Origin: Mizuhopecten yessoensis
Lineage: Eukaryota
DNA length: 64,000 nt
Reading direction: 5' to 3'
NCBI RefSeq assembly: GCF_002113885.1
Contig: NW_018403525.1
Location: 5,894-69,893, forward strand
The notes below the pieces were generated by a model that saw only the letters and a program-made list of their open reading frames with translations, searched no databases and was not told where the DNA came from. The translations under genes and the position numbers were made by a program. How positions within the stretch are numbered: the stretch's first letter is position 1; every line of letters begins with the position of its first letter. Shown one piece after another: positions 6,662-56,780 of the stretch.

Positions 6662-6898
6662 NNNNNNNNNNNNNNNNNNNNNNNNNNNNNNNNNNNNNNN
6701 NNNNNNNNNNNNNNNNNNNNNNNNNNNNNNNNNNNNNNNNNNNNNNNNNNNNNNNNNNNNNNNNNNNNNNNNNNNNNNNNNNNNNNNNNNNNNNNNNNNN
6801 NNNNNNNNNNNNNNNNNNNNNNNNNNNNNNNNNNNNNNNNNNNNNNNNNNNNNNNNNNNNNNNNNNNNNNNNNNNNNNNNNNNNNNNNNNNNNNNNNN
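6662..6898. other. Assembly gap (N run) flanked by C tracts
   Basis: 237 Ns, with poly-C on both sides. Confidence 0.99.
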
Positions 6899-17793: not shown

Positions 17794-18043
17794 GTAAGTG
17801 CATCAACTTCTGTAGGACAACAATCAAAACGCACGCTACTTCAGTAAACTGATTTGCCTTGAAGTGATCTTAACGGTACAATGTCTTTGAATGCGCGTAC
17901 ATTACGTCACCGCTCAGAATCTTATTATGTTAATAATTGCAACGGGTGCTAGAGTTACTATCCCCTAACAGTCATATTAACATACATGTATTCTAATTGC
18001 GTAAACTTTATTGTTACAAAAGTGTGTCATTATTTTCTTACAG

Positions 18044-18416
18044 TTACATGTATACAGACCAAATAGCCCTGACTGTCCAGACGGTTGTTCCAGTATTCAA
18101 TGTCGCCCGGAAGTACTGTGTAGACGTCCTTGTTACGGTGTGCTACAACTTCCTACAAACAAATCTTTCGCCAGCCAATGCCTGTTTCCTTCTCGAGCAA
18201 TCTCACGCCTACACTGAGGATCAACTAATGGCAGCGTGTCTAAAAGTTATTGGAGAGTCGCCTGAAAAAATAATAAAATCAGAATCCTTTGTTGACCTGT
18301 GTCCGAGCTGCCTGACTTGTATTACTAGATCGGATGAGCTTGGTATGGATGAGAGTCACGTATACAAGGCTGTTATGAATTGGGCGGAAAAGGAATGTAT
18401 TCGGAAAAAAATTAAG
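18044..18416 (+). CDS. BTB-BACK protein, exon 2
   Basis: Acceptor TTCTTACAG|T restores FLTYMYTD. Contains ARKY and BACK motifs (ESHVYKAVMNWAEKEC). Donor AAG|GTAATT is phase 0. Confidence 0.9.
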
Positions 18417-18534
18417 GTAATTATTTATCAAATATATATCCATTTTTCGCCATACCTTTTCGAAATTTCACAAACACACTGTAACATTCCGTACCCGAAA
18501 GAACATTTGTACACAACAGCTTTAAACTTGAAGA

Positions 18535-19870
18535 CGCTATGAAAACTATCACGCCGAATAGACCTTACCTTACTCGATAACACTATGCAAACTAGCCAAT
18601 CGGTCAGAAAAAGTCACCTTAGGGTGATAAGCCAAAAACTCGATGACGTTTTGTAAAATAGCTCGCTGGCTAGAAAACGTAACATATCATAAATATAGGA
18701 TCTTACATGAGTTTCCATGTCATATGAGATTTATTAAACGAGTCCAACAACTTTTCCTTTTAGCGAGCCTCTGTCATTATGAAAACTAGCCCGCCGACTA
18801 GATGACATTACCATACAAAAGCTCAAAACTCGATGACGCAATGAAGACTAGCCCGCCGACTAGATGACATTACCATACATAAGCTTAAAACTTGATGACG
18901 TTATGAAAGCTAGCCCGCCGACTAGATGACATTACCATACATCAGCTGAAAACTCGATGACGCTATGAAAACTAGTCCGCCGGCTAGATGATATTACCAA
19001 ACATAAGCTGAAAACTTTATGACGCTATGAAAACTTGCCCGCCCGCTAGATGACATCACCTTACATCAGCAGAAATATCAATGACATTTTGAAAATAAAC
19101 CCGCCAGTTAGATGACATTACCTTACATGATGACTCAACTCAATAGGACAACATTTTCATTGATATAGATATTATGTATGATGAACTAGTTGCACCGATT
19201 CATTGAGTGTCCATAATATAAAAGAACTGTGTTTACTAGAAAAAATCATCTATGAGGCAAAAGAAAAAAGGTATAACAATGGAATATGATTGTCTTCATT
19301 ATCTGTATATTGTCCATGATTTGTGTATAATATGTATTGTATACTGATGGGCCAATGCCCTTAAGTTCGAAAAAAACTTGAAAAAAAAAAAAAAAAAAAA
19401 AAGAATATATAAGCTGAACAATTGATGACTCTATGAAAGCTAGCCCGCCGGCTAGATGACATTACCTTTCATACGCTGAAAGCTCGATGACGCTATACAA
19501 ACTAGTCAATTGGCTAGATGACATCACCTTATATATGCTGAAAACTCAATGACTCTATGAAAACTAGCCCGCCGGCTAGATGACATTAACTTTCATACGC
19601 TGAAGGCTCGATGACGCTATACAAACTAGCCAACTGGCTAGATGACATCACCTTATATACAATTGCATGCTGAAAACTCAATGACGCTATGAAAACTAGC
19701 CCGCCGGCTAGATGATATTATCTTACATAAACTTAAAACCCGATGACGTTATGAAAACTATCCCGTCGGCTAGATGACATACGCTGAAAGCTCGATGTCG
19801 CTATGAAAATGAGTACGCAGGCTAAATGACGTTACCTACATTAAGCTGAAAATTCGATGACGCCGTAAAA
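18535..19870. repeat. 62-bp intronic minisatellite, interrupted
   Basis: Unit ATGAAAACTAGCCCGCCGGCTAGATGACATTACCATACATAAGCTGAAAACTCGATGACGCT; period 62 at 18779, 18841 and 18903. Confidence 0.88.
19129..19402 (+). mobile_element. Poly(A)-tailed retroposed fragment inside the 62-bp array
   Basis: Non-repeat sequence ending in an A-run at 19381-19402. The array resumes in register afterwards. Confidence 0.55.
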
Positions 19871-27529: not shown

Positions 27530-29030
27530 GTGCTACCACGATGTAGATCAAACTTGACAACCTACCACGCTGTAGATCAGTCTTTACAACCTACCACACT
27601 GTAGATCAATCTTTACAACCAACCAAGCTATAGATCAAACTTTACAACTTACCACGCTGTAGATCAATCTTTACAACCTACCACGCTGTAGATCAATCTT
27701 TACAACCTTACAACTTTACAACCTACCACGCTGTAGATCAAACTTTACACCCTACCACGCTGTAGATCAATCTTTACAACCTACAACTTTACAACCCACC
27801 ACGCTGTATATCAAACTTTACAACCTACCACGCTGTAGATCAATCTTTACAACCTACCACGCTGTAGATCAATCTTTACAACCTACAACTTTACAACCCA
27901 CCACGCTGTATATCAAACTTTACAACCTACCACGCTGTAGATCAAACTTTACAACCTTACAACTTTACAACCTACCACGCTGTAGATCAATCTTTACAAC
28001 CTACTCATATGTAGATCAAACTTTACAACCTTACAACTTTACAACCTACCACGCTGTAGATCAAACTTAACAACCTACCACGCTGTAGATCAAACTGTAC
28101 AACCTACCACGCTATAGATTAAACTTTACAACCGACCACGCATAGATCAAACTGTACAACCTACCACACTGTATATCAATCTTTAAAACTTACCACGCTG
28201 TAGATCAATCTTTACAAATTACCATGCTGTAGTTCAAACTTTAAAACTTACCACGCTGTAGATCAATCTTTACGACCTACCATGCTGTAGTTCAAACTTT
28301 AAAACTTACCAAGCTATAGATCAATCTCTACAACCTAACTTCGCTGTAGATCAATCTTTACAACCTACCACGCTGTAGATCAAACTGTACAACTTACCAC
28401 GCTGTATATCAAACTGTACAACCTACCAAGCTGTATATCAAACTGTACAACCTACCACGCTGTAGATCAAACTGTATAACCTACCACGCTGTATATCAAA
28501 CTGTACAACCTACCACGCTGTAGCTCAATCTTTACAACCTACCATGCTGTAGATCAAACTGTACAACCTACCACGCTATAGATCAAACTTTACAACCTAC
28601 CACGCTGTAGATCAAACTTTACAACCTACCACACTGTAGATCAAACTTTACAACTTACCACGCATAGATTAAACTTTACAACCTACCAATCTATAGATCA
28701 ATCTTTACAACTTACCATGCTGTAGATGAAACTTTACAACCTACCACGCTGTAGATCAAACTTTACAACCTATGACGCTGTAAATCAAACTTAACAACCT
28801 ACCACGCTATAGATCAAATTTTACAACCTACTACGCTGTAGATCAAACTTTACAACCTACAACGCTATGATCAAACTGTACAACCTACCACGCTGTAGAT
28901 CAAACTTTACAACCTACCACACTGTATATCAATCTTTAAAACTTACCACGCTGTAGATCAATCTTTACAACCTACCATGCTGTAGTTCAAACTTTAAAAC
29001 TTACCAAGCTATAGATCAATCTCTACAACC
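27530..29030. repeat. 29-bp minisatellite
   Basis: Unit ACAACCTACCACGCTGTAGATCAAACTTT, about 50 copies. Confidence 0.95.
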
Positions 29031-29662
29031 TCCAAAACCGTATCTTACTCATAAGGGAAAAAAAATCCCGGATATGTATGTCATTCCGGTCAGTGTGTAT
29101 CCTGTGTTTGTGTCTGACACGAATTGAACTGTAATGATGTACGTGATATCTTCTGTGATGTACTTGTTACCATATCTGACATGCTAACGTCAACATTACA
29201 TATCCACTTTATGATATTGCACCTCTTACATCTTGTTTTTTTCGACCCGTCGGATAACGACTCCTTGCGGTGCTGTACTATAAAATCCTGTTTATTACGA
29301 AAATCTGGCCATTTATTATTTATCGATTTCTCATAGTGTGTTCCTTAAGGTTGAAACTTACATACTGGTACAGTACAAGCGTAGGTGTTAACTAAAATAA
29401 GGCTTCATATTCTCTAGACTGTAAAGATGTCAAGTCAAGTGCGTAAACAAGCAGATGGTATTTACGTTATCACATCGTTCGTATGTCCGTCCGACGTTCC
29501 GTCTGTCTTTTAACCCAACTTCTGACTGCAACTAGTCCCATAGTTTTGATACAAATCTTTTGAGTTTTGATGTGTGTATCTAGAATCATATGAAAATGCT
29601 CGAATTTTACGACAGTTAATGTCCGATAATTTTTGAAATTATGGAATGATTTTGGATATGGG

Positions 29663-30862: not shown

Positions 30863-31262
30863 CATCCTGGATACCCAGGGGTCACGTCATCCTCGATACC
30901 CAGGGGTCTCCTCATCCTCGATACCCAGGGGTCACGTCCTCCTCGATACCCAGGGGTCACGCCATCCTCGATACCCAGGGGTCACGTTATCCGGGATACC
31001 CAGGGGTCACGTCATCCTGGATCCCCAGGGGTCAAGTCATCCTCGATACCCAGGGGTCACGACATCCTCGATACCCAGGGGTCACGTGATCCTGGATACC
31101 CAGGGGTCACGTCATCCTGGATACCCAGGGGCCACGTCATCCTCGATACCCAGGGGTCACCTCATCCGCGATACCCAGGGGTCACGTCATCCTCCATACC
31201 CAGGGGTCACGTCATCCTCGATACCCAGGGGTCACGTCATCCTCGATACCCAGGGGTCACGC
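30863..31262. repeat. 25-bp minisatellite (16 copies)
   Basis: Unit CATCCTCGATACCCAGGGGTCACGT. Confidence 0.95.
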
Positions 31263-31583: not shown

Positions 31584-31649
31584 AATGATGCGTGAATTAG
31601 ATCAACTTCTGATAAAGCTTTTTACGATGCCAAAGTGGTTATTTATATC

Positions 31650-32132
31650 TGTAGCCCCTTGCCCCTCAAATTATAAGACGACAGGCTTGGATGTTTTATC
31701 TTGTTTATTCCCGTAGGAAAAACCTGTAATATTAACAAACGAATACAATAGATACATTTGATAACACATTGACCTGAACTTACATACATCGAATTGAATA
31801 CAAAGACGCGAGTATACAAGACGGTAAATTACAAACGTACAATGACAATGTGAACATTACAGACAGACTTACCAGGGCTGATACGGATGGATGTTGACTC
31901 CTACGAGTCCTGAAGAGGAATGGCTGGAGAGAGTTGGGTTGGGACGTGACAGGACTCCGGTCTGCCCGTGCATTCCGTTTATACTCCTCACCCCATTCAA
32001 CCAATCATACGCACGCACGTACATACTGACATGTATTTACTTATGTAAGAATGACAATGTTATGCACGTGATAGATGATGTGTTAGTGCAGTGAACCTAG
32101 TACACATGGGGTACAGGGTTACATGGGTTACA
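31650..32132 (-). repeat. 3' LTR (483 bp)
   Basis: Direct repeat of 39796-40278. The ORF-track peptides are identical at an offset of 8146. Confidence 0.97.
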
Positions 32133-32143
32133 CACTCCCCCGG
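32133..32143 (-). other. Polypurine tract
   Basis: Minus-strand CCGGGGGAGTG immediately precedes the TG of the 3' LTR. Confidence 0.75.
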
Positions 32144-32966
32144 TTTGATGAAAGCCTCCTGGCGCTACATAAAATCATATTAACATTTATTACATAGGTT
32201 ATTGATTATATGAAAACTTATTGCACTAGTAACAATAACACATTATCACTGTCATAAAACCTGTTGCCTCGCTACCCACAAGGTTTCATTAAACAGTAAT
32301 AACACGACCAGAATTATGATGTATGGACTATACAGATATAGAATGTACCAAAAAACGAGTAGATTTATTAACAAAGATCTTCCGCAATTATGGTAAAGAA
32401 TATGCTTATATGCATATATTATCTTGTATAATGTAGGTCACCTTTACAGGTGATCTATCCACACCAGTGAATACAAATTCACTATAACTATATATAGGAC
32501 ACCTGCAGGATCTTGACAACTATTTGCACATTGTCACATAACGCTGCATAAGGGTTGGTCCAAATAGACATCCTCGACACCCGATCCATTCAATGTAGAT
32601 AATGATGATACATGCTTCTGCAAGCAATGGGTTTTCTGATCAACGAACTGAATGGTTTGGCCAATCCATACCAATCCAGCACGTTGATCCAAACACATTG
32701 ATGATATGATGGTAAAACAATACTGGATGATATGTATAAAACATTATATTAATAACTATACTTGTAATGAAATTGCTAGTCACCTGTTTAGGTCGTCCCT
32801 GAGGTTTGGCCTATCCATACCATCAAGGCTATAGACCATCACAGATCACGTTAAAAATACTTTAAAATACCTCAAGGAATCACCTCGACATATGTTAAAA
32901 ACAATGACATGGATTTTAAAAAACTAGTGTTCGGTGTTGATACAACTTCTTGTTGACAGGTTTACA

Positions 32967-35900
32967 TCAGACTTTTGAATGACTTTGCAGGAGAAAAACC
33001 CAATGCCCATACAGATCAGGTGGTTTACGTACACGTCCTGTACGTCTAGGTTCTTGAACCTCAGGACCACCTGGATCCGTCTGATGAGAGCTAGGTGAGC
33101 TCAAATCAAGGCTTGGCACAGACTCCCGCTCTCGCATAGAATTATGAAGCCCTGACTCAGGCTCATGCACACTGGAGTCACCTGTAGACTCCAGTAACTC
33201 AACTAAGTCAGAACTTTGACCCAGCTCACTCTCAGTGATAATGGTATTTGGTTCGTATCGAGTTAACGGTGTCTCATGTGCAGGGGTTATTCTTTTCGTC
33301 CTGCGTCGCGTGGAACGCCTCGGGTTATAAGGGGGTGATAACTTAGTCTCCATGCTGGAGTCTGAAGATGAAGATGAGGTTTCAGAGTCTGTCTGAGCGA
33401 CACAAACTGTCCGTTTCTCACGTCTGTCCTTGCGGTCAGACGCTGTAGGGGGAACCTCCACCGGAATGGAGTTGAAAGGAAGCAACATGTTTCTATGCAG
33501 GGTACGTTTTCGTCCCCTTGCACCATCATGTGCAACTTCATACACAGGAATATCACTGTTGGGGATGTTAATCACCACACAGGGTTCCTGTTCCCACCTA
33601 TCGGCCAACTTGTTTTTACCCTTGAGCCCTACCTTTCTTACAAGGATACGGTCTCCAACCTCAAGCTTTGAATCCCGAACCTTCCGGTCATACCGGGTTT
33701 TGTTCTGTTCGGATTTCTTCTTAGCTTCATTTCGAGCTGCCTTATACGCCACCTCCATCCTAGTCTTAAGTTTGCTGACATAGGAGGAGGGATCTACTGT
33801 ACCCTGCTGTCCAGGGTCAGTACCCAAGAACGCGTCCACTGACAACCGGGGGTGCCATCCAAACATGAGGAAATGGGGAGAGTACCCCGTGGCATCACTC
33901 CTGGTTGCATTATAGGCCTGGACCATTGGTGCGACATAAGATCTCCAATCCTTTTTCTTGGACTCATCAAGTGTGGCTAGCATACCAATGAGTGTTTTAT
34001 TGAACCTTTCCGCTGACCCGTTTCCCATCGGATGATATGGAGTGGTTCTAGATTTCCTAACCCCGGCCACCTTACAGAGTTGTTTAATGACACCACTCTC
34101 AAAGTTACGGCCCTGATCACTATGTAGCCTTTCAGGAAAACTGTAATACACTATAAATTTCTCATAGAGAGCTTTGGCTGTAGTGTACGCCTTTTGACTC
34201 TTACAAGGCACAGCTTGGGCATACCTGGTAAAGTGATCGGTTATCACTAGAATGTTTTCAAATCCGTCAGACGACCTTTCTAGACCGAGAAAGTCGATAC
34301 ACACCAACTCCATCGGTCTAGTCGTCTGTATGGGTACTAAACCAGCGGTAGGTTTGATAGGAGATTTCCTTCTTATGCAGCGACCGCAGGTCTCAACCTT
34401 TTCGTTTACATCTTTCTCCATACCTGGCCAGTAGAAACGCTGCCTAGCCAACCAAAGTGTTTTCTCCTTTCCCTGGTGACCAACATCATCGTGGATACCC
34501 CTCAGGGCGAGGGAATGGTACTGCTTTGGAAGGACAAGCTGTTTGATTTTCTGACCGTCAAGAGAAGCGGTTCTTAACAGGACACCGTCGTGTAAACTCA
34601 AGGTATTCCAAGTTCTAAGCATTTTCTGGACATATCGAGTTTCATCCTTGAGCCGTTTCCCCCTGGGATTAAAACCGGTTCTCTTCAGGTGTGAAACCCG
34701 CGCAATATCCGAGTCCTGACGCTGCTGTTTCACCCAGTCAATAGTCGCAAGTTTATCCGTTGACTCTGCACTCTCACTGGCCAGATAAGGCACAGAATCG
34801 TCAGACACACTTTCCGCTAGTGGGGCGACAATGACTGCTGATTGGCATATAGCCTTGACAACGTCAGTACTAACCTGGGATATGCGTGAGAGACCGTCCG
34901 CGTCAGCGTTATTTTTCCCAGCACGATACGACAAGGTGAAATCATAATTTGCAAGAGCAGCAACCCACCTGTGGCCGGTGGCATCCAGCTTGGCTTTTCC
35001 AAGCACATAAGTAAGAGGATTGTTGTCGGTCACCACTTCAAATGAATTACCATAGAGGTAGTCATGAAGTTTGTCCGTAACTGCCCACTTAAGTGCAAGG
35101 AATTCCATCTTATGTGCCGGATAATTCCGCTCACTTGGTCGTAGCCCACGACTAGCATATGCAATCACTTTCTCGCCATCTTCATGTTTCTGATAAAGCA
35201 CAGCGCCTAGTCCTAGGCCGCTGGCATCAGTATGGAGGATGAATGGCTTAGTGAAATCAGCATATGCCAGAACTGGGGGATTCATCAGTCTCTCCTTCAA
35301 GGTCTGAAAGGCGACCTGCTGGGACTCTTCCCAGACCCATTCAGCCTTTGCCTTAGGTTTTTTCTTAGATTTAACCTTCGGTTTGACCTTAGATTTCTTA
35401 TGCAGATCATGACCTTGCAAGAGTTGATTCAGGGGTTGTGCTATTGCAGCGTAATCTTTGATAAAACGCCTGTAGTACCCACTGAATCCTAGAAACTGAC
35501 GAAGCTCCTTTACATTCTGTGGTCGTGGCCAATCTTTAACGGCAGACACCTTTTCAGGGTCCGTAGCTATACCGTCTTCAGACACGACATGCCCCAAATA
35601 TGTCACAGATTTCTTAAAAAGCTCACATTTGGAAGGTTTTAATTTCAGGCCATGTTGGCTTAGTCTGGCAAAAACCGATTCCAACCTAGTCAAGTGCTCG
35701 TCAAAAGTACGAGAGAAGATAAGGATATCATCAAGGAAAATGAGACATTCTCTCAGATGCATGTCACCCATACACTTTTCCATCATTCTCTGAAAAGTAG
35801 CACCAGCATTACAAAGACCAAACCCCATTCTGTTAGTCTCCCAGAAACCCAGGTTACCAACAGAAAAGGCTGTTTTTTCTTTGTCTGCTTCGTCCATCTC

Positions 35901-37190
35901 GATCTGCCAGTATCCTGATCGAAGGTCCAACTTAGAAAAGTATTTTGACCCAATCAATGTGTCTACTGTGTCATCGAAACGTGGCAACATATACGCATCT
36001 TTACGGGTTCGCTTATTAAGCATGCGATAATCTATGCAGAATCGTAATGAACCGTCTTTTTTTCGAACCAGCACAACGTTCGATGAAAAAGGACTGTTTG
36101 ATTCCCTTATCACACCCGCTTCTAACATTTCCTTTACGTGCTGACGGACCTCTTCGTATATACCGGGTGGTACCTTACGATACGGCTGTTTAAAAGGCCG
36201 GTCTTCTAAAAGCTCAATTGTGTGCTTCACGAGGTCCGTGCATCCTATATCAAAAGCGCTGGTGGAAAACGCATGTTTCCAATTCCCTAGCACCTGACGC
36301 ACCCTAAGTAGTTGCTCATCACTAAGGTTCTCAGTATTTATCTGTATCCCAAGCTCTTCAGGAATTGATTTTGTTGCCTCAGTAGCTGGCAGGTTTGAAG
36401 CCAAGTTGTCAACGACCTGTACCTGATTTACTGAGCAAAGCAATGATCTCGGTGATATAATGATAGGCTTAGCCGTAATATTACAGATTTTAACCGGGAT
36501 CTTCACGCTTGACACATGATTTTTAAGTTTGAGAACCCGTGGGCAAACTGTATACTTTAGGTTGGAATAGTCGAAGTTGTTTTCTGTTACTATGTTGTCG
36601 ATTTCGGGATCTAATCCTCTGACCATACCGTTAACTACTGCAGACTCGTACGGAGCAACCTTGAAGGGTTTACGGTTAATGGACCGCACACCGTACGTGC
36701 ATGTTATGCTATCTACAGCGGTTTTCCACATGGCTGGCATTTCTAACTCCTCTGATGAGTCTTTTACAAGCCTAATCACATTTGTACCCAACAAAACAGG
36801 GCACTTTTTGTTGTAATCCGTATCCGGCACAACTATCGCCAATATACTAAAGTTTGTTTCTCGCATAAAAGGTATTTGGACATCACACTCTATAAATCCT
36901 AAATAATTCAGAGCAGACCCATTTGCCACAGTGATATCCAGACCTAATAAACTCAGATCATTCATCTCTGGTTTATCTTCTAACCTGTCATAGAATGACT
37001 CTGCTATAGTGGATACCTGTGACCCACTGTCTATAAGACCTTTGACTTTTTGACCTTGAATGTAGACTATTCCTTCGTTCGAAACACCTAATAGCCTATC
37101 CAACACATCCGCTTGGCCATTTGATTGTTCACCAGCCTCTGGTTGGCCTACAGCAGAGACGGTTATTCTTTTGGGCTTTTCTGATTTTTT
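32967..37190 (-). CDS. pol: Pol polyprotein (aspartic protease, RT, RNase H, integrase), entered by -1 frameshift
   Basis: Motifs LIDSGS; RFCIDYR, LDLRSGYWQ, FLDD; TDASG, VTDNNPL; HDDVGH..CGRC, CIDF, HSDQG, ERFNKT. The frame stays open about 28 codons upstream of the track's start and overlaps the end of gag. Confidence 0.96.
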   Translation of the reverse strand, partial: KKSEKPKRITVSAVGQPEAGEQSNGQADVLDRLLGVSNEGIVYIQGQKVKGLIDSGSQVSTIAESFYDRLEDKPEMNDLSLLGLDITVANGSALNYLGFIECDVQIPFMRETNFSILAIVVPDTDYNKKCPVLLGTNVIRLVKDSSEELEMPAMWKTAVDSITCTYGVRSINRKPFKVAPYESAVVNGMVRGLDPEIDNIVTENNFDYSNLKYTVCPRVLKLKNHVSSVKIPVKICNITAKPIIISPRSLLCSVNQVQVVDNLASNLPATEATKSIPEELGIQINTENLSDEQLLRVRQVLGNWKHAFSTSAFDIGCTDLVKHTIELLEDRPFKQPYRKVPPGIYEEVRQHVKEMLEAGVIRESNSPFSSNVVLVRKKDGSLRFCIDYRMLNKRTRKDAYMLPRFDDTVDTLIGSKYFSKLDLRSGYWQIEMDEADKEKTAFSVGNLGFWETNRMGFGLCNAGATFQRMMEKCMGDMHLRECLIFLDDILIFSRTFDEHLTRLESVFARLSQHGLKLKPSKCELFKKSVTYLGHVVSEDGIATDPEKVSAVKDWPRPQNVKELRQFLGFSGYYRRFIKDYAAIAQPLNQLLQGHDLHKKSKVKPKVKSKKKPKAKAEWVWEESQQVAFQTLKERLMNPPVLAYADFTKPFILHTDASGLGLGAVLYQKHEDGEKVIAYASRGLRPSERNYPAHKMEFLALKWAVTDKLHDYLYGNSFEVVTDNNPLTYVLGKAKLDATGHRWVAALANYDFTLSYRAGKNNADADGLSRISQVSTDVVKAICQSAVIVAPLAESVSDDSVPYLASESAESTDKLATIDWVKQQRQDSDIARVSHLKRTGFNPRGKRLKDETRYVQKMLRTWNTLSLHDGVLLRTASLDGQKIKQLVLPKQYHSLALRGIHDDVGHQGKEKTLWLARQRFYWPGMEKDVNEKVETCGRCIRRKSPIKPTAGLVPIQTTRPMELVCIDFLGLERSSDGFENILVITDHFTRYAQAVPCKSQKAYTTAKALYEKFIVYYSFPERLHSDQGRNFESGVIKQLCKVAGVRKSRTTPYHPMGNGSAERFNKTLIGMLATLDESKKKDWRSYVAPMVQAYNATRSDATGYSPHFLMFGWHPRLSVDAFLGTDPGQQGTVDPSSYVSKLKTRMEVAYKAARNEAKKKSEQNKTRYDRKVRDSKLEVGDRILVRKVGLKGKNKLADRWEQEPCVVINIPNSDIPVYEVAHDGARGRKRTLHRNMLLPFNSIPVEVPPTASDRKDRREKRTVCVAQTDSETSSSSSDSSMETKLSPPYNPRRSTRRRTKRITPAHETPLTRYEPNTIITESELGQSSDLVELLESTGDSSVHEPESGLHNSMRERESVPSLDLSSPSSHQTDPGGPEVQEPRRTGRVRKPPDLYGHWVFLLQSHSKV

Positions 37191-38362
37191 TTAGATCCAT
37201 GGCCTTGATACTTAGAGTTTCCTTGCCCACGACCTTGACCTTTACTCTGACCTTGACCCTTACTCTGACTTTGACCTTGACCTTTGTGGTATGACTTTTG
37301 ACTGTTTAGTTTTTCAAGTATTTTGTCAAACTTAGAGTCAATCTGAGAGACAACCTTCTCCTCCAATAGTTTCAACTTTTTGTCAAAGTCTTTCGAGATG
37401 TCACCTACGCTCAGTTGATCAACCTCGACTGAAACTGCTTGGTGCTGACCTTTTTTCTTTTGAGTAGTGTTGTTGGCCAATTCCAACTCGCTCTCCACTG
37501 TCCTGATCTCTCGTAAGAGTGAATCGTAATCAGTCAGGGTATCATACTTGTGACGAGTTTGACTCTTTAATTTATCAGAGTGTAGTGATGTCCAAAACTT
37601 ATGCCTAAGAAGATCATTTTTGGCGGATTTTGGTAATGACCCATTCTCAATCGCGATTTGCAATACTTGCTCTAATCTACAACCAAAATTGGTAGCTGGC
37701 TCATCAGGTTTTTGTTTGGAGTTAAAAAATTCTTGCATAATCATGCCATGTGTAGCTATATCTCCAAATAGAGCGTCTAGCTTGGTTAAAATCTCCTGTG
37801 GAGTGGCCTTCTCTCCCAAATGAACCAATGTCCTTCTGGCAACACCCCGCAATGAGCGGCGTATTGCCTGAACCACCGTACTCTGGGATAATTCCTGGTC
37901 TGACATGAGACAACGAATCTCATACCTCCAATCAGAGTACAGGACATCCCCTTTCAAAGGAGGGTTCTCACCTGAAAACAGAGGTGGTTTAGGGGTTTGT
38001 TGAGGCCTTGAGTAAAAACTGGCCTCCGAGAAACTATGATCGCCTGCCGCGATTGAGCTAGTTCTCGGCCTAGTATAGGCGTCCTCCTCCACTGGTGAGA
38101 GTATACTCACCCTAGGTTTAGGAGCAACAGCGGGGGAAGTACGAGAGCCATCCCGTTGCTTAGGGATAATAATATAGTTCCCCATAGCTTTTAGAGATTT
38201 GATCAGCTCTTCCTCACTCATACCTTTGACTTCCCCGTCCTCTTTTTTTAGGTCCTTAGGATCAATCCCTAAATTGCTTATCGCCTCTGTATCCTTCAAA
38301 GGAGGGGGTAATTTATACTGGGATTCTCCATCCTCTGAAGTTAGAGCATTTTTTTCAGCCAT
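37163..38362 (-). CDS. gag: Gag, PNMA-like capsid (399 aa), no CCHC knuckle
   Basis: PLFSG...YSDWRYEI...IRRSLRG...LDALFG...FFNSKQKPDE...RLE pattern typical of PNMA/Gypsy capsids; lies directly upstream of pol. Confidence 0.88.
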   Translation of the reverse strand: MAEKNALTSEDGESQYKLPPPLKDTEAISNLGIDPKDLKKEDGEVKGMSEEELIKSLKAMGNYIIIPKQRDGSRTSPAVAPKPRVSILSPVEEDAYTRPRTSSIAAGDHSFSEASFYSRPQQTPKPPLFSGENPPLKGDVLYSDWRYEIRCLMSDQELSQSTVVQAIRRSLRGVARRTLVHLGEKATPQEILTKLDALFGDIATHGMIMQEFFNSKQKPDEPATNFGCRLEQVLQIAIENGSLPKSAKNDLLRHKFWTSLHSDKLKSQTRHKYDTLTDYDSLLREIRTVESELELANNTTQKKKGQHQAVSVEVDQLSVGDISKDFDKKLKLLEEKVVSQIDSKFDKILEKLNSQKSYHKGQGQSQSKGQGQSKGQGRGQGNSKYQGHGSKKNQKSPKE

Positions 38363-38411
38363 GTTTGATCGAACTGGATTTCTCTTTTTTTTTTTACTTG
38401 AAATAGATAGA

Positions 38412-39125
38412 TCAAATACAATCGGAGAAAATCTTCTCCGTCAGGCGTTTCATCCAATACCGAGCTAATAACTCGGATGGATGGATCCCGTCCTTAAATA
38501 GATCGTAGGCGACGGTACGATTGCGCCGACGGCTTGAGTACCTCAATACATCGAGGTGAAACCTTAAGGAGGTGACCCCTACTTTCTCGTTAACCCGACG
38601 GATGTAGGAGTTTAAGAAGTCTATCCGACCAACCAATATCTCATCCTGTTCAATAAACTGCTCAGGGTTTTTATGTCCCTTGCATCTGTTCCATATCCCT
38701 ATACTATAAGGGGGAATCTCCAGGAATGTAAGTTTGACAGTTGGAAAATTTTGTAAAAAAACAACAATGGAGTCTATACTGCTCCTGACATACCCCTCAC
38801 ACTCTAAGTCTGAGGTATGTGCTAGGTTAATGTACCTTCCTACCTTGGTGGTAAGATCGCAGGTTCCCAACCAAACATATAAGACAATATTTTTATGTCT
38901 GCGCACTCGCTCAGGTAAAAAACATTGGAGCCAATGCAGTGCCTGACCAAAAGTACCCCCTGCCCTACACTGAAATTCCAGATTATAACCTAAATTTTTG
39001 ATGATATCCTCATTTCGTTTCAAAAAATAGCCTTTACTACTGGTCACAAGAATGGGATATTTATTCAGAAAATGGGGTGGGGTAACAGGCTTTTCTATAT
39101 ATTTGGTTAACTTACTTACACTCAT
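38412..39125 (-). CDS. SGNH/GDSL hydrolase-fold accessory protein (237 aa, ORF0)
   Basis: Correctly ordered blocks: I ILVTSSKG, II CRAGG, III VWLGTCD, V KDGIHP. Intact ATG to TGA, inside the LTR element. Confidence 0.8.
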   Translation of the reverse strand: MSVSKLTKYIEKPVTPPHFLNKYPILVTSSKGYFLKRNEDIIKNLGYNLEFQCRAGGTFGQALHWLQCFLPERVRRHKNIVLYVWLGTCDLTTKVGRYINLAHTSDLECEGYVRSSIDSIVVFLQNFPTVKLTFLEIPPYSIGIWNRCKGHKNPEQFIEQDEILVGRIDFLNSYIRRVNEKVGVTSLRFHLDVLRYSSRRRNRTVAYDLFKDGIHPSELLARYWMKRLTEKIFSDCI

Positions 39126-39781
39126 TTAGAAATATTCATGACTAAACACATGTGTACTAGGTTCTGAAAGTGCAAATGCTTTGAACTTACCTTGCATTCA
39201 TGTGCTTGGGAGACACTCAGGAAGGGATACGGGATATGGGAAGGTTTTGCTACTCATGGTAATTCTGGTGATGGTGATGATTATGACAACGATGATGATG
39301 ATGAATGCAGAAACGAGGATTAATGATCCCTGGTAAGACAAAAATTACGAATAAATATTAAACAATAAACATGTATAACGTACTAAATGTTGAAGTTGCT
39401 CAAAACAATTTTTTTTTTTTTTATAAATAAATTCAAATTTTTGGCAGTGTCCAAACTGGTTTCGGCATAATTTTCACACTTAGACGAAATCACATATGAT
39501 AAAGAGTTCTCCAGGTCAGTCGACTGGCGTTCACGCCCGTGTCCACCATCTTAACTGTCCTCTTTTCCTCCTTAAAAACCCTTAGGATTGACCTGCCGAA
39601 CCTTTTCCCAGGTCAGGTCCATCAACACCTCCACGCCATCATTTCCCCATGTAGGTAGTGTTCTCTTACTCTGGTTCCTTAGCGAACCGGAAGTCGCCGG
39701 TGTGACCTTCACCTTTGCGGGTAGGAGGGAATTCCGGAAAAACCATACACACAGGTTCGACGGCTGGCCCTGGTTTTATTT

Positions 39782-39793
39782 ACGTGGGCGCCA
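39782..39793 (-). other. Primer-binding site, tRNA-Lys-like
   Basis: TGGCGCCCACGT begins 2 nt after the 5' LTR and resembles the tRNA-Lys(CUU) PBS TGGCGCCCAACGT. Confidence 0.75.
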
Positions 39794-39795
39794 TT

Positions 39796-40278
39796 TGTAG
39801 CCCCTTGCCCCTCAAATTATAAGACGACAGGCTTGGATGTTTTATCTTGTTTATTCCCGTAGGAAAAACCTGTAATATTAACAAACGAATACAATAGATA
39901 CATTTGATAACACATTGACCTGAACTTACATACATCGAATTGAATACAAAGACGCGAGTATACAAGACGGTAAATTACAAACGTACAATGACAATGTGAA
40001 CATTACAGACAGACTTACCAGGGCTGATACGGATGGATGTTGACTCCTACGAGTCCTGAAGAGGAATGGCTGGAGAGAGTTGGGTTGGGACGTGACAGGA
40101 CTCCGGTCTGCCCGTGCATTCCGTTTATACTCCTCACCCCATTCAACCAATCATACGCACGCACGTACATACTGACATGTATTTACTTATGTAAGAATGA
40201 CAATGTTATGCACGTGATAGATGATGTGTTAGTGCAGTGAACCTAGTACACATGGGGTACAGGGTTACATGGGTTACA
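39796..40278 (-). repeat. 5' LTR (483 bp)
   Basis: TG..CA ends; adjacent to the PBS. Confidence 0.97.
40124..40151 (-). promoter_or_regulatory. LTR promoter: CCAAT element plus TATAAA
   Basis: Minus strand reads ATTGG...GAGTATAAACGG. An AATAAA lies at 39850-39855 near the LTR end. Confidence 0.55.
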
Positions 40279-42394
40279 TATCCTTTTTTTTAGGAATAAT
40301 AAATCGAAAAGAAGTTTACTTCACATAGTTTTATTTTATAACATGCCGTTCTTAAATAAAATAAATTAATATATCAAACAAACTGTGCGTTATCAATATA
40401 ATTATAAATAGAGAGGTCAGCATTTTGCATATTGATAATATTAATCATTATAGAAATATACTTTAAAGTGAAAGTATTTGATTTCCTGGTAACCTCCTAT
40501 GTGTTTTGTCATAGTAATATCGAAACATCATGCTTAGTTAACTTCTCCTTTCCCGCATGCCTTGATAGCTGAATTCAGACAAAGCTAGTTATCTCCTAAT
40601 TCGTTTATTTGACTATATTTGAAGAAAAAGTTTTTAAAAAAATCCAAGTTTGCCCATCCCACTTCACTGCGCATTTTTTCTTACTCGTATACACAGTTAA
40701 CTCCCCTTAATTTCGTCTTTTAGATAGTTTGACCAGGACATTGCGCGTGTATAACAATCTGAAATCAATGGTTGAAGTTCCCACCTGGATTTTACATTTA
40801 CTGTCGTTGGTTACATTTTGTTTATATAACCTTCATCGTTTTTCTTTGAAGTCCCGCAAGGTATGGTGTCTGTTTTCACAAATAGTTTATTATGGCAACA
40901 TATAAATCCTGCCCAACAGTTTCCTATGCGTATCAACGGGTTTGACATTGCTACGGGGATCACTTATTCATCAAATCGTGTTTTTTTTTGTGCCAGACAT
41001 ATATATACATGTTTGTGCGTTCTTAGTTTGAAACCTGGCACGTCCTTAAATGACCAAAGCTATTAATAGGACGTCGGACACAAACGAACCCAAACCAAAG
41101 CAATCTTAGGTTGGAGTGGCCATTGACACTCACCATCACACACTTGTACACCATATACGATGTAAAATGGTTGAGTTTTGAAGAAAAACCGCTGCGTCAC
41201 AATAAGCATTTGCTCATTTACCCCTGAGGACACATTTTAATTCGTCCAAATCAGAGGTTGGAATACTTCATTATGTAATTTCATGGGTGATCGAGTTAAC
41301 CAAATCTCCCGGATATGTGACACACGAGAGGGATTCGGATCGTACATTAAACAGTCATAACGACACAATAGATACATAGGTCAAAGACCACTGCTAATAT
41401 ACAGTGACGGTCACCGTTAGGACGAGAACCATACTTAGAAAAGGCCATTAAACCACTTCACACGTCAACCTCTGATAAAGTCCCGTCCACCCACGCATTG
41501 TACATGTGTACCGAACAGTAACCAGTGCTGACCGGTGTCCGGAGCGTTAATTTAACTGTAAATATCACCCTCGAACAGATCTATGTGATGTTAACCTGAT
41601 TGATGGAAGAGCCATATACACGAACGATAGGGAACCTAAAGGATAGCTACACTTACAGCGGAAGTGGGTCTGCACTCTGACAGTGCAACCTGCGCGAGGC
41701 AGAAATAGTAAAACGATCATATTAGGTATCTTAAATCAGATTCATCTGTTTGGAAAGATGTGATGTCAAAGTTTAACTTTCTTCACACGCAATATACGTA
41801 GTAAACATGTCGCATACGTGTAATGTTTAATACAATGTACGTACATTGTTTGTGTAGAAAGTAAAACTGAGAGATCCTATTAGGTCGTGTATAAGGACTT
41901 GGAAAACAAAGGTTCAAGATTTATACTGAAGTCTGGAAAGACCATAGATTTTTTACAGAAGCTTACCCTTTGCTGGTTACAATTAGTTTAAACCCTTCTG
42001 TATTCGTGCCAATTATAAAACATGTACATTCACAAAAAAACCCCATTTCATTCTGATGATTGAGAAACAAGAACTTTTGTACTTATACATAGTTCTTCTG
42101 ATGGTTACAATTACTAATAGGAAGGTTATAATAAAAAATACTGACTTTTCACACATATGGAGCTTTCCAATCCTGTAAAATGTATTGTCTGCAATTTCTG
42201 TGCAATATTTGGAGTCTTAAACAAGGTAAACTCAATTTGGAGCTCAGTCTATAGTCATTCCTTGTAGTGTGATCCCTTCAGCGATCAAAGCTATAGACAA
42301 CTTGGAAAATATTAACAAGACTCGCGGCTGTATAGAAGATATACATGAGATAATATTAAGATAATGCGCTGGTCTTAGCCGTAAGTAATTGAGA

Positions 42395-45049: not shown

Positions 45050-45960
45050 GGTAAAGGAAGCGTTGTTTGCAGTGTATACCAAGATAAGAAATATTCCTTT
45101 ACCTATTGACTTACAACTTAAATTGTTTGATTCGCTAGTCTTTCCAATGTTATTCTATGCATGTGAAATCTGGGGATTTGAAAATGTAAGTATCATTGAA
45201 AAAATTCATCTGCAATTTTGTAAGAAAGTTTTACATGTTCGAAGAAGTACACCAAATTTTATGGTGTATGGCGAACTGGGCAAATTTCCAATAGAAATAG
45301 AAATTAAAGTTAAAATGCTAATGTTTTGGCATAAGTTAATAACAGGAGGAGATAAGGTATCTAGTGTATTCTATCGCCTAATACTAAAAATGCAAGAAAA
45401 TAAAACTGCAGAATTTAAATGGCTTGGATATATACAATCATTACTTAATAACACAGGGTTTACTAATATTTGTATATACCAAAACACATGTACAATGAAT
45501 AGATCACTCTTCAAAAATTTGCTTAAAAAACGTTTATGTTATCAATTTATTCAAAATTGGTTCTCTATTATTGACTCTTCGTCTCGTGGACAGCTCTGCT
45601 CTATCTTTAAAAACCAGTTTAATTTTGAATCATATCTAGTTAAGCTTAATTCCAGCGAACGTATAATTATCAGCAAATTTAGAATGTAGAACTTAAAATT
45701 ACCCATTGAAACTGGTAGATGGGTTGGTATACCACGTAATAATCGTACTTGTTTGCTATGTAATAATGGTATTGGGGATGAATATCACTATACATTTCAA
45801 TGTAATAATGCTACGATAACTAACTATAGACATAAATACATCGCACATTACTTTTATATTAATCCAAGTTTAGCTGAAGTGAGAGGTATGTTTGAAATTT
45901 GTAATCGACCCTTATTATCCAGAGTGAACTACTTTCTTAAAATGTCAAAAAAAAAAGTAT
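45050..45960 (+). mobile_element. 5'-truncated non-LTR retrotransposon ORF2 C-terminus (RTE-X-like), disabled
   Basis: LFDSLVFPMLFYACEIWG...HLQFCKKVL...VYGELG, an in-frame TAG at 45687-45689, then LPIETGRW...CLLC...DEYH...C zinc knuckle. Confidence 0.85.
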
Positions 45961-51900: not shown

Positions 51901-52487
51901 CCCGTAATGAATTCAGCGGGATGATATTTCTTAGTTTATGTTATACCTTCAAGGAAAACATTCTTTTTGAAATGTTTTTATGTAGATGTGCATTTTAACT
52001 TACTATAGACCCGACATTTCTAGTCGATTTAAACATATTTTATTGATATAATCAAATGAATTGGGCACAAGTAATAACAACATATAGAAGCCCTCTCCTC
52101 AACTATAATATTACATTGACAGTGATAGCGACATATACCAATCAAAATAATTGTATGAAAACAAGGAACATAGAAGAAAAAATATAAAAAAATAAAAAGA
52201 GAGTTTCGAAAGACAGAAGAGATCAAAGAGATGAGCAGAGTATATTTCGAATGATACAAAAGGTTCATTCAAAGTACGAATATTTTGAAACTACTTAACC
52301 TTAAACTACTGCATGGCACGCACTAGCTACACATTCTTTTCACATCAGCTATTCGTTTGTCCATATAAAACACATTCCTTAGAATCTTTCCTGGAGTCAT
52401 TCCTGTTCCTTCTAGGTAACATAACAAAGTGCCATGCAGCGGAATTATTTCAATTTGAAAACCTTTCTAGTTAACTGTTATCATCAA

Positions 52488-55400
52488 GTCTACTGGAGGA
52501 TCGTACAATCAGTTATTACAGGCTGCTGGAGGATCGTACAATCAGTAATTACAGGCTGCTGGAGGATCGTACAATCAGTTATTACAGGCTGCTGGAGGAT
52601 CGTACAATCAGTTATTACAGGCTGCTGGAGGATCGTACAATCAGTTATTACAGGCTGCTGGAGGATCGTACAATCAGTTATTACAGTCTGCTGGAGGATC
52701 GTACAATCAGTTATTACAGTCTGCTGGAGGATCGTACAATCAGTTATTACAGTCTGCTGGAGGATCGTACAATCAGTTATTACAGGCTGCTGGAGGATCG
52801 TACAATCAGTTATTACAGGCTGCTGGAGGATCGTACAATCAGTTATTACAGTCTGCTGGAGGATCGTACAATCAGTTATTACAGTCTGCTGGAGGATCGT
52901 ACAATCAGTTATTACAGTCTGCTGGAGGATCGTACAATCAGTTATTACAGGCTGCTGGAGGATCGTACAATCAGTTATTACAGTCTGCTGGAGGATCGTA
53001 CAATCAGTTATTACAGTCTGCTGGAGGATCGTACAATCAGTTATTACAGTCTGCTGGAGGATCGTACAATCAGTTATTACAGGCTGCTGGAGGATCGTAC
53101 AATCAGTTATTACAGTCTGCTGGAGGATCGTACAATCAGTTATTACAGTCTGCTGGAGGATCGTACAATCAGTTATTACAGGCTGCTGGAGGATCGTACA
53201 ATCAGTTATTACAGTCTGCTGGAGGATCGTACAATCAGTTATTACAGTCTGCTGGAGGATCGTACAATCAGTTATTACAGTCTGCTGGAGGATCGTACAA
53301 TCAGTTATTACAGGCTGCTGGAGGATCGTACAATCAGTTATTACAGTCTGCTGGAGGATCGTACAATCAGTAATCACAGGCTCCTGGAGGATCGTACAGT
53401 CAGTTATTACAGTCTGCTGGAGGATCGGACAGTCAGTTATTACAGTCTGCTGGAGGATCTTACAGTCAGTTATTACAGTCTGCTGGAGGATCGGACAGTC
53501 AGTTATTACAGTCTGCTGGAGGATCTTACAATCAGTTATTACAGTCTGCTGGACGATCGTACAGTCAGTTATTACAGTCTGCTGGAGTATCGTACAGTCA
53601 GTTATTACAGTCTGCTGGAGTATCGTACAGTCAGTTATTACAGTCTGCTGGAGGGTCGTACAATCAGTTATTACAGGCTGTTGGAGGATCGTACATTCAG
53701 TTATTACAGTCTGCTGGAGGATCGTACAATCGGTTATTACAGGCTGCTGGAGGATCGTACAATCAATTATTACAGTCTGCTGGAGGATCGTACAATCAGG
53801 TATTACAGTCTGCTGGAGGATCGTCCAATCAGTTATTACAGTCTGCTGGAGGATCGTACAATCGGTTATTACAGGCTGCTGGAGGATCGTACAATCAAGT
53901 ATTACAGTCTGCTCGAGGATCGTACAATCAGTTATTACAGGCTGTTGGAGGATCGTACTGTCAGTTATTACAGTCAGCTGGAGGATCGTACAGTCAGTTA
54001 TTACAGTCTTCTGGAGGATCGTACAATCAGTAATCACAGGCTCCTGGAGGATCGTACAGTCAGTTATTACAGTCTGCTGGACGATCGTACAGTCAGTTAT
54101 TACAGTCTGCTGGGGGACCGTACACTCAGTTATTACAGTCTACTGGAGGATCGTACAATCAGTTATTACAGGCTCCTGGAGGATCGTACAATCAGTTATT
54201 ACGGTCTGCTGGAGGATCGTACAATCAGTTATTAGAGGCTGCTGGGGGATCGTACAATCAGTTATTACAGGCTGCTGAAGGATCGTACAATCAGTTATTT
54301 CAGGCTGCTGGAGGATCGTACAATCAGTTATAACAGGCTGCTGGAGGATCGTACAATCAGTTAATACAGGCTGCTGGAGGATCGTACAATCAGTTATTTC
54401 AGTCTGCTGGAGGATCGTACAATCAGTTATTACAGTCTCCTGGAGGATCGTACAATCAGTTATTACAGGCTGTTGGAGGATCGTACTGTCAGTTATTAAA
54501 GTCTGCTGGAGGATCGTACAGTCAGTTATTACAGTCAGCTGGAGGATCGTACAGTCAGTTATTACAGTCTTCTGGAGGATCGTACAATCAGTAATCACAG
54601 GCTCCTGGAGGATCGTACAGTCAGTTATTACAGTCAGCTGGAGGATCGTACAGTCAGTTATTACAGTCAGCTGGAGGATCGTACAGTCAGTTATTACAGT
54701 CAGCTGGAGGATCGTACAGTCAGTTATTACAGTCAGCTGGAGGATCGTACAGTCAGTTATTACAGTCAGCTGGAGGATCGTACAGTCAGTTATTACAGTC
54801 AGCTGGAGGATCGTACAGTCAGTTATTACAGTCAGCTGGAGGATCGTACAGTCAGTTATTACAGTCTTCTGGAGGATCGTACAGTCAGTTATTACAGTCT
54901 TCTGGAGGATCGTACAGTCAGTTATTACAGTCTTCTGGAGGATCGTACAGTCAGTTATTACAGTCTTCTGGAGGATCGTACAATCAGTAATCACAGGCTC
55001 CTGGAGGATCGTACACTCAGTTATTACAGTCTGTTTGAGGATCGTACAATCAGTTATTACAGGCTGCGGGAGGATCGTACATTCAGTTATTACAGGCTGC
55101 TGGAGGATCGTACAGTCAGTTATTACAGGCTGCTTGATGATCGTACAATCAGTTATTACAGTCTGCTGGGGGATCGTACAATCAGTTATTACAGTCTGCT
55201 GGACGACCGTACAATCAGTTATTACAGTCTGCTGGAGGGTCGTACAATCAGTTATTACAGGCTGTTGGAGGATCGTACTGTCAGTTATTACAGTCTGCTG
55301 GAGGATCGGACAGTCAGTTATTACAGTCTGCTGGAGGATCGTACAATCAGTTATTACAGGCTGTTGGAGGATCGTACTGTCAGTTATTACAGTCTGCTGG

Positions 55401-56256
55401 AGGATCGTACAGTCAGTTATTACAGTCTGCTGGAGGATCGTACAGTCAGTTATTACAGGCTGCTGGAGGATCGTACATTCAAGTATTACAGTCTGCTGGA
55501 GGATCGTACAATCAGTTATTACGGTCTGCTGGAGGATCGTACAATCAGTTATTACAGCCTGCTGGAGGATCGTACTATCAGTTATTACAGGCTGCTGGAG
55601 GATCGTTAAATCAAGAATTACAGTCTGCTGGAGGATCGTACAATCAGGTATTACAGTCTGCTGGAGGATCGTACAATCAGTTATTACAGTCTGCTGGAGG
55701 ATCGTACAATCAGTTATTACAGCCTGTTGGAGGATCGTACTATCAGTTATTACAGGCTGCTGGAGGATCGTACAATCAGTTATTACAGGCTGTTGGAGGA
55801 TCGTACAATCAGTTATTACAGTCTGCGGGAGGATTGTACAATCAGTTATTACAGGCTGCGGGAGGATCGTACATTCAGTTATTACAGGCTGCTGGAGGAT
55901 CGTACAATCAGTTATTACAGTCTGCGGGAGGATTGTACAATCAGTTATTACAGTCTGTTGGAGGATCGTACATTCAGTTATTACAGGCTGCTGGAGGATC
56001 GTACTGTCAGTTATTACAGACTGCTGGAGGATCGTACTGTCAGTTATTACAGCCTGCTGGAGGATCGTACAATCAGTTATTACAGTCTGCTGGAGGATCG
56101 TACACTCAGTTATTACAGTCTGTTGGAGGATCGTACAATCAGTTATTACAGGCTGCTGGGGGATCGTACACTCAGTTATTACAGGCTGCTGGAGGATCGT
56201 ACAATCAGTTATTACAGTCTGCTGGAGGATCGTACAATCAGTTATTACAGACTGCT
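52488..56256. repeat. 33-bp intronic minisatellite (about 114 copies)
   Basis: Unit CTGGAGGATCGTACAATCAGTTATTACAG(G/T)CTG. Confidence 0.97.
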
Positions 56257-56780
56257 TGTGGATGCCGGGGCAATACTAACTACTATTTAATATCTTTACA
56301 TGTTAGGCCTTAAGTCCTTAAGATCCAGGACATTCAAATACTACAATACAAAATACAATTAAATGATCAAGGTGAAAATATATGTATACATATTTATATT
56401 AACCGAATGCGCCGCTAAAAGAAAATCTGCAGATATTTAACTAGAGTGTAGCTCTTACAAATTGTTTCATGTAATACTATAGGTGAATGGACACATTTTA
56501 AAGGCTACATTTGAAATCATTTCTGAAGGGAAATGTTAAAATATACTGAAAAATGGTAACACACTATAGCCCTGGTTTCCTAAAAGACAATACAACCTCT
56601 ATCATCCAATAGTATTGTTATATCTCCTATTATTCATAGAATATTGTCTGCACTCAAAAGTGTATATAAATGTAACAAGACTATACTTAACAGGTCCCAT
56701 TATACTACATGCAATATCTACAAACTTGAAGTCAAAACGGCGTTAAATAAATGGGGGTAATTATAGTTGAAGAAATCTCA

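Follow-up and report, generated by a model that had tools for sequence, protein, structure and literature searches.

The window analysed here is a stretch of 64,000 nucleotides from Mizuhopecten yessoensis (NCBI RefSeq assembly GCF_002113885.1, contig NW_018403525.1, positions 5,894 to 69,893 of the forward strand). On its minus strand lies a complete Ty3/Gypsy long terminal repeat (LTR) retrotransposon in which an additional open reading frame (ORF), called ORF0, stands ahead of gag. The predicted product of ORF0 is a small SGNH-fold protein belonging to a large family, members of which also head long interspersed nuclear elements (LINEs) of bivalves. ORF0 is read here as an integral accessory gene, and its likeliest role (probability about 0.6) would be that of a lipid- or membrane-directed acyl esterase aiding the assembly or trafficking of the element's particle or ribonucleoprotein (RNP). 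The parts of the element, in window coordinates, are as follows (aa, amino acids; nt, nucleotides; PBS, primer-binding site; pI, isoelectric point; RT, reverse transcriptase).

31650-40278, minus strand: complete Ty3/Gypsy LTR retrotransposon, 8,629 bp, with identical LTRs and a target-site duplication at its ends and three uninterrupted ORFs
40279-40282, minus strand: target-site duplication, upstream copy, GATA in element orientation, 4 bp
39796-40278, minus strand: 5' LTR, 483 bp, TG..CA ends, TATAAA at LTR position 150 and AATAAA at 424
39783-39793, minus strand: PBS, TGGCGCCCACG, starting 2 nt past the 5' LTR
39126-39782, minus strand: leader from PBS to ORF0; the distance from LTR to ORF0 is 670 nt
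38412-39125, minus strand: ORF0, 237 aa from ATG to stop, predicted stand-alone SGNH-fold esterase-like protein, pI 9.5
38363-38411, minus strand: spacer between ORF0 and gag, 49 nt, 49% A, with an A11 run and no ATG
37163-38362, minus strand: gag, 399 aa, PNMA-type (Ty3-like) capsid domain (Pfam PF14893, E 9.6e-11)
32967-37190, minus strand: pol open frame, in the -1 frame relative to gag with a 28-nt overlap; Pfam RVT_1, RT_RNaseH, Integrase_H2C2 and rve
36774-37067, minus strand: pol protease domain, a weak Pfam aspartyl protease match
35586-36068, minus strand: pol RT domain (Pfam)
34944-35333, minus strand: pol RNase H domain (Pfam)
33900-34529, minus strand: pol integrase domain (Pfam)
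32133-32966, minus strand: 3' untranslated region, 834 nt, with the polypurine tract GGGGGAG at 32135-32141 adjoining the 3' LTR
31650-32132, minus strand: 3' LTR, 483 bp, 100% identical to the 5' LTR
31646-31649, minus strand: target-site duplication, downstream copy, GATA

The two LTRs agree at 483 of 483 bases, and a single TATAAA is followed by a single AATAAA in the expected order. ORF0, gag and pol are each free of stops and frameshifts, and the Pfam scan gave the pol domains in the Gypsy order of protease, RT, RNase H and integrase. As the LTRs are identical and the genes intact, the insertion was recent; the element is a recently inserted, intact Ty3/Gypsy copy. The earlier note, made from the sequence alone, had described LTRs that looked identical and a complete 237-aa ORF between PBS and gag, on the strand of both and ending 49 nt before the gag ATG. 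Its coordinates proved exact, and the Pfam domains of the window element bear out the ORF0-gag-pol architecture that it proposed. No env-like ORF was found in the 834 nt 3' of pol, where the longest ORF has 54 aa, and a search of the 64-kb window for a tRNA gene, which bears on the question of the cognate primer, gave none. The 670-nt leader (39126-39795) is unusually long. Gag and pol overlap at 37163-37190, and the pol frame opens within a run of eight A; this run is a candidate -1 slippery site, so that pol would presumably be reached by a programmed frameshift.

The structure of the ORF0 protein was modelled with AlphaFold2 using an alignment of 38 relatives. The model had a mean predicted local distance difference test (pLDDT) score of 95.5 and a predicted template modelling (pTM) score of 0.90, and displays the three-layer alpha/beta/alpha SGNH fold with a parallel central sheet. 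Comparison of the model with the PDB using Foldseek gave 139 matches at E<=1e-3. The best 50 of these (E 3e-8 to 2.6e-5) were, with few exceptions, GDSL/SGNH esterases or acyltransferases, the top matches having a probability of 1.00, a template modelling (TM) score of 0.5-0.7 and a sequence identity of 12-18%. Among the matches listed are the Bacteroides acylhydrolases 4iyj, 4ppy, 4hf7 and 3p94, sialate O-acetylesterases (6njc) and the peptidoglycan O-acetyltransferase PatB (8tlb). Comparison with a library of viral structures returned only phage SGNH esterases. Within the family, weak Pfam matches were obtained to Lipase_GDSL (6 of 39 members) and Lipase_GDSL_2 (5 of 39), with a best E of 2.2e-4. 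The protein lacks a hydrophobic N-terminus, a signal peptide and a transmembrane segment, as judged from sequence and model, and the model has an N-terminal helix and a long helix at residues 154-181 that are the family's own. Its pI of 9.5 is close to the family median of 9.46 (181 members).

The codons of the residues expected in the active site lie as follows.

39036-39038, minus strand: ORF0 codon Ser30, nucleophile position of block I
38958-38960, minus strand: ORF0 codon Gly56, oxyanion glycine position of block II
38859-38861, minus strand: ORF0 codon Cys89, block III, at the place of the superfamily Asn
38490-38492, minus strand: ORF0 codon Asp212, block V
38481-38483, minus strand: ORF0 codon His215, block V

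Alignment and model agree on the placement of these residues. S30-K31-G32, part of a D/S-S-K-G motif, directly follows strand 1 (residues 23-28), G56 follows strand 2, G87-T88-C89-D90 follows strand 3 and D212-G-I-H215 precedes the last helix. Conservation was counted over 181 full-length members, some of which are only ~33% identical to the window ORF0. S30 is conserved in 99% and K31 in 97%, G56 in 96%, G87 in 98%, T88 in 97%, D90 in 90% and D212 and H215 each in 97%; position 89 is Cys in 98% and Asn in the other 2%. The ordered SGNH blocks noticed earlier in the translation are thus present, and the four motifs form the most conserved columns of the family alignment. The protein is a predicted SGNH-fold hydrolase with a Ser30-His215-Asp212 triad and Gly56 as an oxyanion residue, and the retention of triad and glycine argues for an enzyme. 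Judging from the alignment, the cysteine at the oxyanion position marks a distinct 'S-G-C-H' subfamily of SGNH proteins.

A different reading of the same fold is that of a scaffold, in which ORF0 would bind RNA or protein and chaperone the element RNA without hydrolysis. The OSK domain of Oskar is an SGNH-fold protein that lacks an active site, and both the basic pI of ORF0 and the loss of the canonical oxyanion asparagine are in keeping with such a function. The preservation of Ser30, Asp212, His215 and Gly56 at 96-99% down to ~33% identity is, however, hard to explain without catalysis, the residue that replaces asparagine is an invariant cysteine and not a drifting position, and the esterase of the zebrafish LINE ZfL2-1, the only studied analogue, showed no binding to oligo(A) RNA (PMC3905857). 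Given this conservation of the catalytic residues, a function in RNA binding alone, like that of OSK, is considered the least likely for the protein, and improbable as such.

Relatives of ORF0 are numerous. A word-indexed search found 79 with 33-54% identity, at E 1e-15 to 5e-81 and nearly all of 230-260 aa, which excludes chance resemblance. A profile search gave 1,628 cluster representatives at E<=1e-3, and 259 of them reach E<=1e-30. Of the 1,628 representatives, the best 150 are nearly all stand-alone proteins of ~230-260 aa that span the whole profile; among them the esterase is a separate protein with a conserved C-terminus, and fusion to gag or ORF1 was not seen. Host names attached to the family are Mytilus edulis, Mytilus coruscus, 'invertebrate metagenome' and bins of lucinid-clam symbionts, evidently with contigs of the host among them. 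The named hosts are bivalves only, with no rotifer among the named matches. One UniRef entry in the family had been named automatically 'SGNH hydrolase-type esterase'. Several 90% clusters comprise tens of near-identical full-length copies on Mb-scale contigs, which indicates that the carrier elements were recently active. A scan of viral contigs (IMG/VR) gave no relatives of ORF0.

Genomic context was examined at 32 locus identifiers, two of which (L002 and L007) denote the same contig, and the genes downstream of each ORF0 homologue were classed. Three kinds of element recurred. Gypsy lineage A, with a PNMA-type gag as in the window, shows the order ORF0-gag-pol in L001, L002/L007, L028 and L029; ORF0 with a lineage-A type pol was also found in L016 (without gag) and L018. 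Gypsy lineage B, with a PEG10/Ty3-capsid gag, has the same gene order in L006, L019 and the contig of P0074, and its pol is only 25-31% identical to that of the window element. The third kind are LINEs with an apurinic/apyrimidinic-type endonuclease (APE), in which ORF0 is followed by an ORF1 of ~700 aa and then by APE endonuclease and RT; this order was found in L005, L008, L010, L012, L014, L015, L021, L023, L024, L025 and, from Mytilus edulis, L027. The ORF1 of L005, the only LINE ORF1 that was scanned, contains a PHD finger.

Several observations at these loci stand on their own. In the bivalve LINEs, for instance at L005:1554-3692 and L027:9861-11954, the esterase is a separate first ORF ahead of ORF1, and the esterase and PHD parts that are reported to occur together in CR1-like ORF1 proteins are split over two ORFs in L005. 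At L003:1354-5248, an ORF0 homologue (35% identical) lies 445 nt upstream, on the same strand, of a gene for a 911-aa protein with Mutator-like transposase and YqaJ/alkaline-exonuclease domains. L003 and L004 count as one observation because the identical protein occurs in both. A search for terminal inverted repeats enclosing the L003 homologue and the Mutator-like gene found none. On a Tara ocean metagenome scaffold (L032:48-3862), an ORF0 homologue lies ~1.35 kb downstream of a DUF5641 ORF of the type found at the end of BEL/Pao pol; this could be a third LTR superfamily carrying the esterase gene, in 5' or 3' position. The Mutator-like and BEL/Pao associations are represented by one independent locus each and may be mere adjacency. 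The nearest named relatives in the RT region are frog and fish Gypsy elements with 50-57% identity (P0220-P0230 and similar), some of which have a PNMA-type gag fused to pol. The nearest pol relatives include sequences of bivalve hosts that contaminate symbiont bins.

An unbroken ORF0 is present in the window and at 16 distinct loci examined; it is split once at five (L013, L018, L021, L024 and L026) and only partly visible at seven (L014, L015, L016, L020, L022, L023 and L025). Gag is split once in L002/L007, gag and pol are each split once in L018, and the pol of L028 was called in pieces. Among relatives the spacer between ORF0 and gag ranges from 49 to 623 nt, and neither the A-run nor the spacer length is conserved. 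The A11 run of the window element had been considered as a relic poly(A) tail or as a conserved translation signal; both readings were rejected, since relatives lack the run and differ in spacer length.

The distribution over elements bears on the main rival to a role in assembly or trafficking, namely that ORF0 is a host-interface or counter-defence enzyme. It would deacylate a host molecule, for example a restriction factor, a signalling lipid or a glycan or nucleic acid that bears a modification, and thereby lift a barrier common to all mobile elements. What speaks for such a host-acting enzyme is that the family serves both capsid-forming and capsid-less elements without ever being fused to their structural proteins: it occurs in Gypsy elements of two lineages, which form capsids and whose pol proteins are as distant as stated above, and in APE-type LINEs, which do not, and nearly all of the best 150 representatives have the size of a separate protein. 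Members also adjoin the Mutator-like transposase gene and the BEL/Pao-type pol end, and several of the closest solved structures, the sialate O-acetylesterases and PatB, deacetylate or acetylate sugars. On the other side, the basic pI suits membrane binding and nucleic-acid binding equally well, and the Mutator and BEL/Pao cases, being single independent loci, are possibly no more than neighbours. A host-acting enzyme is regarded as less probable than the role in assembly or trafficking.

A bolder form of the same idea, held more tentatively still, is that the 'S-G-C-H' esterase is a free-moving cassette. It would have been passed repeatedly among the two Gypsy lineages, the APE-type LINEs with a PHD-containing ORF1 and possibly BEL/Pao and Mutator-like elements, and kept for disabling or bypassing a shared host barrier. 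If true, the cassette would correspond, in eukaryotic transposons, to the anti-defence genes that phages trade among themselves, with a cysteine-assisted chemistry unlike that of classical SGNH enzymes.

Selection on ORF0 was estimated from the ratio of nonsynonymous to synonymous substitution rates (dN/dS) in lineage A. Two independent pairs gave 0.18 (dS 0.67) and 0.20 (dS 0.40); the comparison of L001 with L002 was excluded, dS being saturated between distant elements. Within lineage A, identity to the window element falls from 69% to 41% for pol and from 52% to 38% for ORF0, while the position of ORF0 is constant. The identities of ORF0, gag and pol to the window element change roughly in step, although not in the same rank order. 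A neighbour-joining tree of 52 ORF0 members places all five lineage-A sequences in one clade that contains no LINE or lineage-B member (bootstrap 67%), and lineage-A sequences were split from LINE and lineage-B sequences in 98 of 100 replicates. LINE-borne ORF0s cluster apart with weaker support. Lineage B has no firm position in this tree.

Because dN/dS is 0.18-0.20 and divergence runs roughly in step with that of pol, these comparisons indicate that ORF0 is a selected, integral gene and not a nested insertion. In bivalve APE-type LINEs and in a second, distant Gypsy lineage, a member of the same family is likewise the first ORF; the family therefore appears to act as a module that passes between retroelement classes and, once in a lineage, is inherited vertically. 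The refuting tests that the earlier note had named turned out in its favour. The SGNH fold was recovered by AlphaFold and Foldseek, ORF0 is present and intact at 38-54% identity in sister elements (L001, L002, L028 and L029), dN/dS is not near 1, and a separate nested insertion is not indicated, since ORF0 keeps its position across elements.

These results also bear on the reading of ORF0 as a passenger, that is, a gene captured from the host or what is left of a nested element, such as the 5' end of a LINE, sitting in this Gypsy copy without a role in the element. The A11 run can be read as the relic of a poly(A) tail, and homologous ORFs head LINEs, as such an origin would predict. Yet the run is missing in relatives, ORF0 stands at the same place in Gypsy elements with a pol identity of no more than 41-69%, and it is under purifying selection and clusters by element lineage. 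In the window element, moreover, no internal duplication was found around ORF0 and no LINE remnant flanking it. A passenger origin is accordingly very improbable.

By analogy with the ORF1p esterase of ZfL2-1 (PMC3905857), the role in assembly or trafficking can be set out as follows. ORF0 would be translated from the full-length RNA of the element as its first long ORF, giving a small, basic, cytosolic acyl-esterase. The positive surface of this protein would bind negatively charged membranes or lipids, and the enzyme would hydrolyse or transfer an acyl ester. The outcome would be help in the assembly, localisation or trafficking of the element's particle or RNP. The anatomy of the element, the fold, the conserved residues, purifying selection and the distribution are what the analysis shows, whereas the enzymatic activity, the substrate, the membrane binding and the mode of gag translation are inferred.

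A number of points weigh against this role and against parts of the case for it. At the level of sequence, the match of ORF0 to Pfam Lipase_GDSL_2 is weak (E 0.16, 12.9 bits against a cut-off of 32.9), and searches of PDB chain sequences gave no match at E<=10 for ORF0 or the family profile, 4c1b included, so that the fold is seen by structure comparison only. As 4c1b, the ZfL2-1 structure, is also absent among the best 50 of the 139 Foldseek matches, the ZfL2-1 analogy rests on fold and context and not on close kinship. Block III reads G-T-C-D and not GxND, and with cysteine in place of the oxyanion asparagine the chemistry may differ from that of classical SGNH esterases. Bootstrap values of the ORF0 clades are moderate (67%, 43% and 40%). 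Expression raises two further difficulties. The leader contains 15 upstream ATGs, whose ORFs are all short (26 codons at most), and simple cap-dependent scanning to ORF0 is therefore questionable. Gag stands behind an ORF of 237 codons, so that its translation must rely on splicing, internal entry or re-initiation. LINEs are known to re-initiate translation between their two ORFs.

Elsewhere in the window, two tandem arrays lie just outside the 3' LTR, at 30863-31261 (25-bp unit, 16 copies) and 28035-29031 (29-bp unit, 34 copies), and the element was therefore inserted next to satellite-like DNA. An open frame of 208 aa at 45063-45689 contains a weak LINE RT-like stretch, 30% identical over 77 aa to the RT of L005, and is probably an old LINE fragment. 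At 17997-18542, an open frame with BTB and BACK domains is likely an exon of a host kelch-like/BTB gene. The GC-richer region 52434-56279 contains long open frames of 614, 515 and 414 aa that overlap and occupy both strands, none of them with a Pfam match. A run of 237 N at 6662-6898 is an assembly gap or a masked stretch.

The presence of an esterase in some retroelements has been a puzzle since 2003; work on it concerns one zebrafish LINE protein, with further cases noted in rotifers. To this is added a large conserved family that comprises at least 1,628 clusters and encodes the enzyme as a protein of its own, and LINE and Gypsy esterases are linked within one family and in the same animals. 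Since that family occurs in capsid-forming Gypsy elements and in capsid-less LINEs, the role of the enzyme is narrowed to something that both life cycles need. Many intact, recently active copies are at hand for expression and structural study, and the route by which gag-pol is translated becomes a question in itself, given the long ORF that precedes gag on the RNA.

Among known systems, the LINEs come first. Kapitonov and Jurka reportedly recognised in 2003 the esterase domain of the type IV ORF1 protein (ORF1p) in CR1 and L2 LINEs. Like those domains, the SGNH fold of ORF0 is encoded at the 5' end of its element and ahead of the polymerase gene. The ORF0-bearing bivalve LINEs are of the APE type, and the PHD finger in the ORF1 of L005 is a domain reported from CR1-like ORF1s. 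In addition, 3p94, the best template for L2 esterases (PMC4120745), is among the top Foldseek matches of ORF0. The link to LINE esterases is closer than was supposed in the earlier note, as members of the same stand-alone family head bivalve APE-type LINEs. In one study, esterase ORF1s were confined to vertebrate subgroups of CR1 and L2 (PMC4120745), whereas the ORF0 family occurs in invertebrates. For ZfL2-1, a Gag-like membrane targeting of the RNP was suggested by the authors of its structure (Schneider et al. 2013, PMC3905857, PDB 4c1b). Its esterase is an ORF1p domain fused to a coiled coil and keeps Asn195 as an oxyanion residue, whereas ORF0 is a separate 237-aa ORF with cysteine at that place and shares no detectable sequence match with 4c1b, either directly or through its profile (E<=10).

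Cellular and bacterial SGNH/GDSL hydrolases agree with ORF0 in overall fold and in how blocks I, II, III and V are ordered and placed. They differ from it in sequence (12-18% identity), in the Cys of block III, in the helices that are particular to the ORF0 family and in not being borne by transposons. Other extra genes of Ty3/Gypsy elements, the env of errantiviruses and the additional ORFs (aORFs) of plants (PMC13524379, PMC7264820), resemble ORF0 as lineage-specific genes kept by selection. They encode envelope or unknown proteins, usually 3' of pol or antisense, whereas ORF0 is enzyme-like, on the sense strand and ahead of gag. Full-text searches of the literature gave no paper that describes an esterase gene upstream of gag in a Gypsy element, Repbase being outside this comparison, and a recent survey of metazoan Gypsy elements mentions no upstream esterase gene.

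The closest parallel is offered by the Vesta LTR retrotransposons of bdelloid rotifers, whose ORF3 encodes a GDSL esterase/lipase common to Athena Penelope-like elements (Rodriguez, Kenefick and Arkhipova 2017, PMC5408684). In the same paper, esterases are also noted in Neptune-type elements of fish and molluscs, and an auxiliary role like that of the ZfL2-1 esterase is proposed, without evidence, for those of rotifer LTR elements. Vesta and the window element are alike in having a stand-alone SGNH/GDSL-type ORF in an env-less LTR retrotransposon, shared with another retroelement class, with intact catalytic residues and neither coiled coil nor transmembrane domain. In Vesta, however, the ORF lies 3' of pol and S-G-N-H is intact, as compared by description, whereas ORF0 lies 5' of gag and has cysteine for asparagine; the rotifer host and Penelope-like partner there are replaced here by bivalve hosts and an APE-type LINE partner. 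To call the window element an undescribed system, as the earlier note did, was thus too strong, since GDSL esterase ORFs in LTR elements, common to other retroelement classes, were known from bdelloid rotifers. From that precedent the window element is set apart by the position 5' of gag, the bivalve hosts, the LINE partner and the replacement of Asn by Cys.

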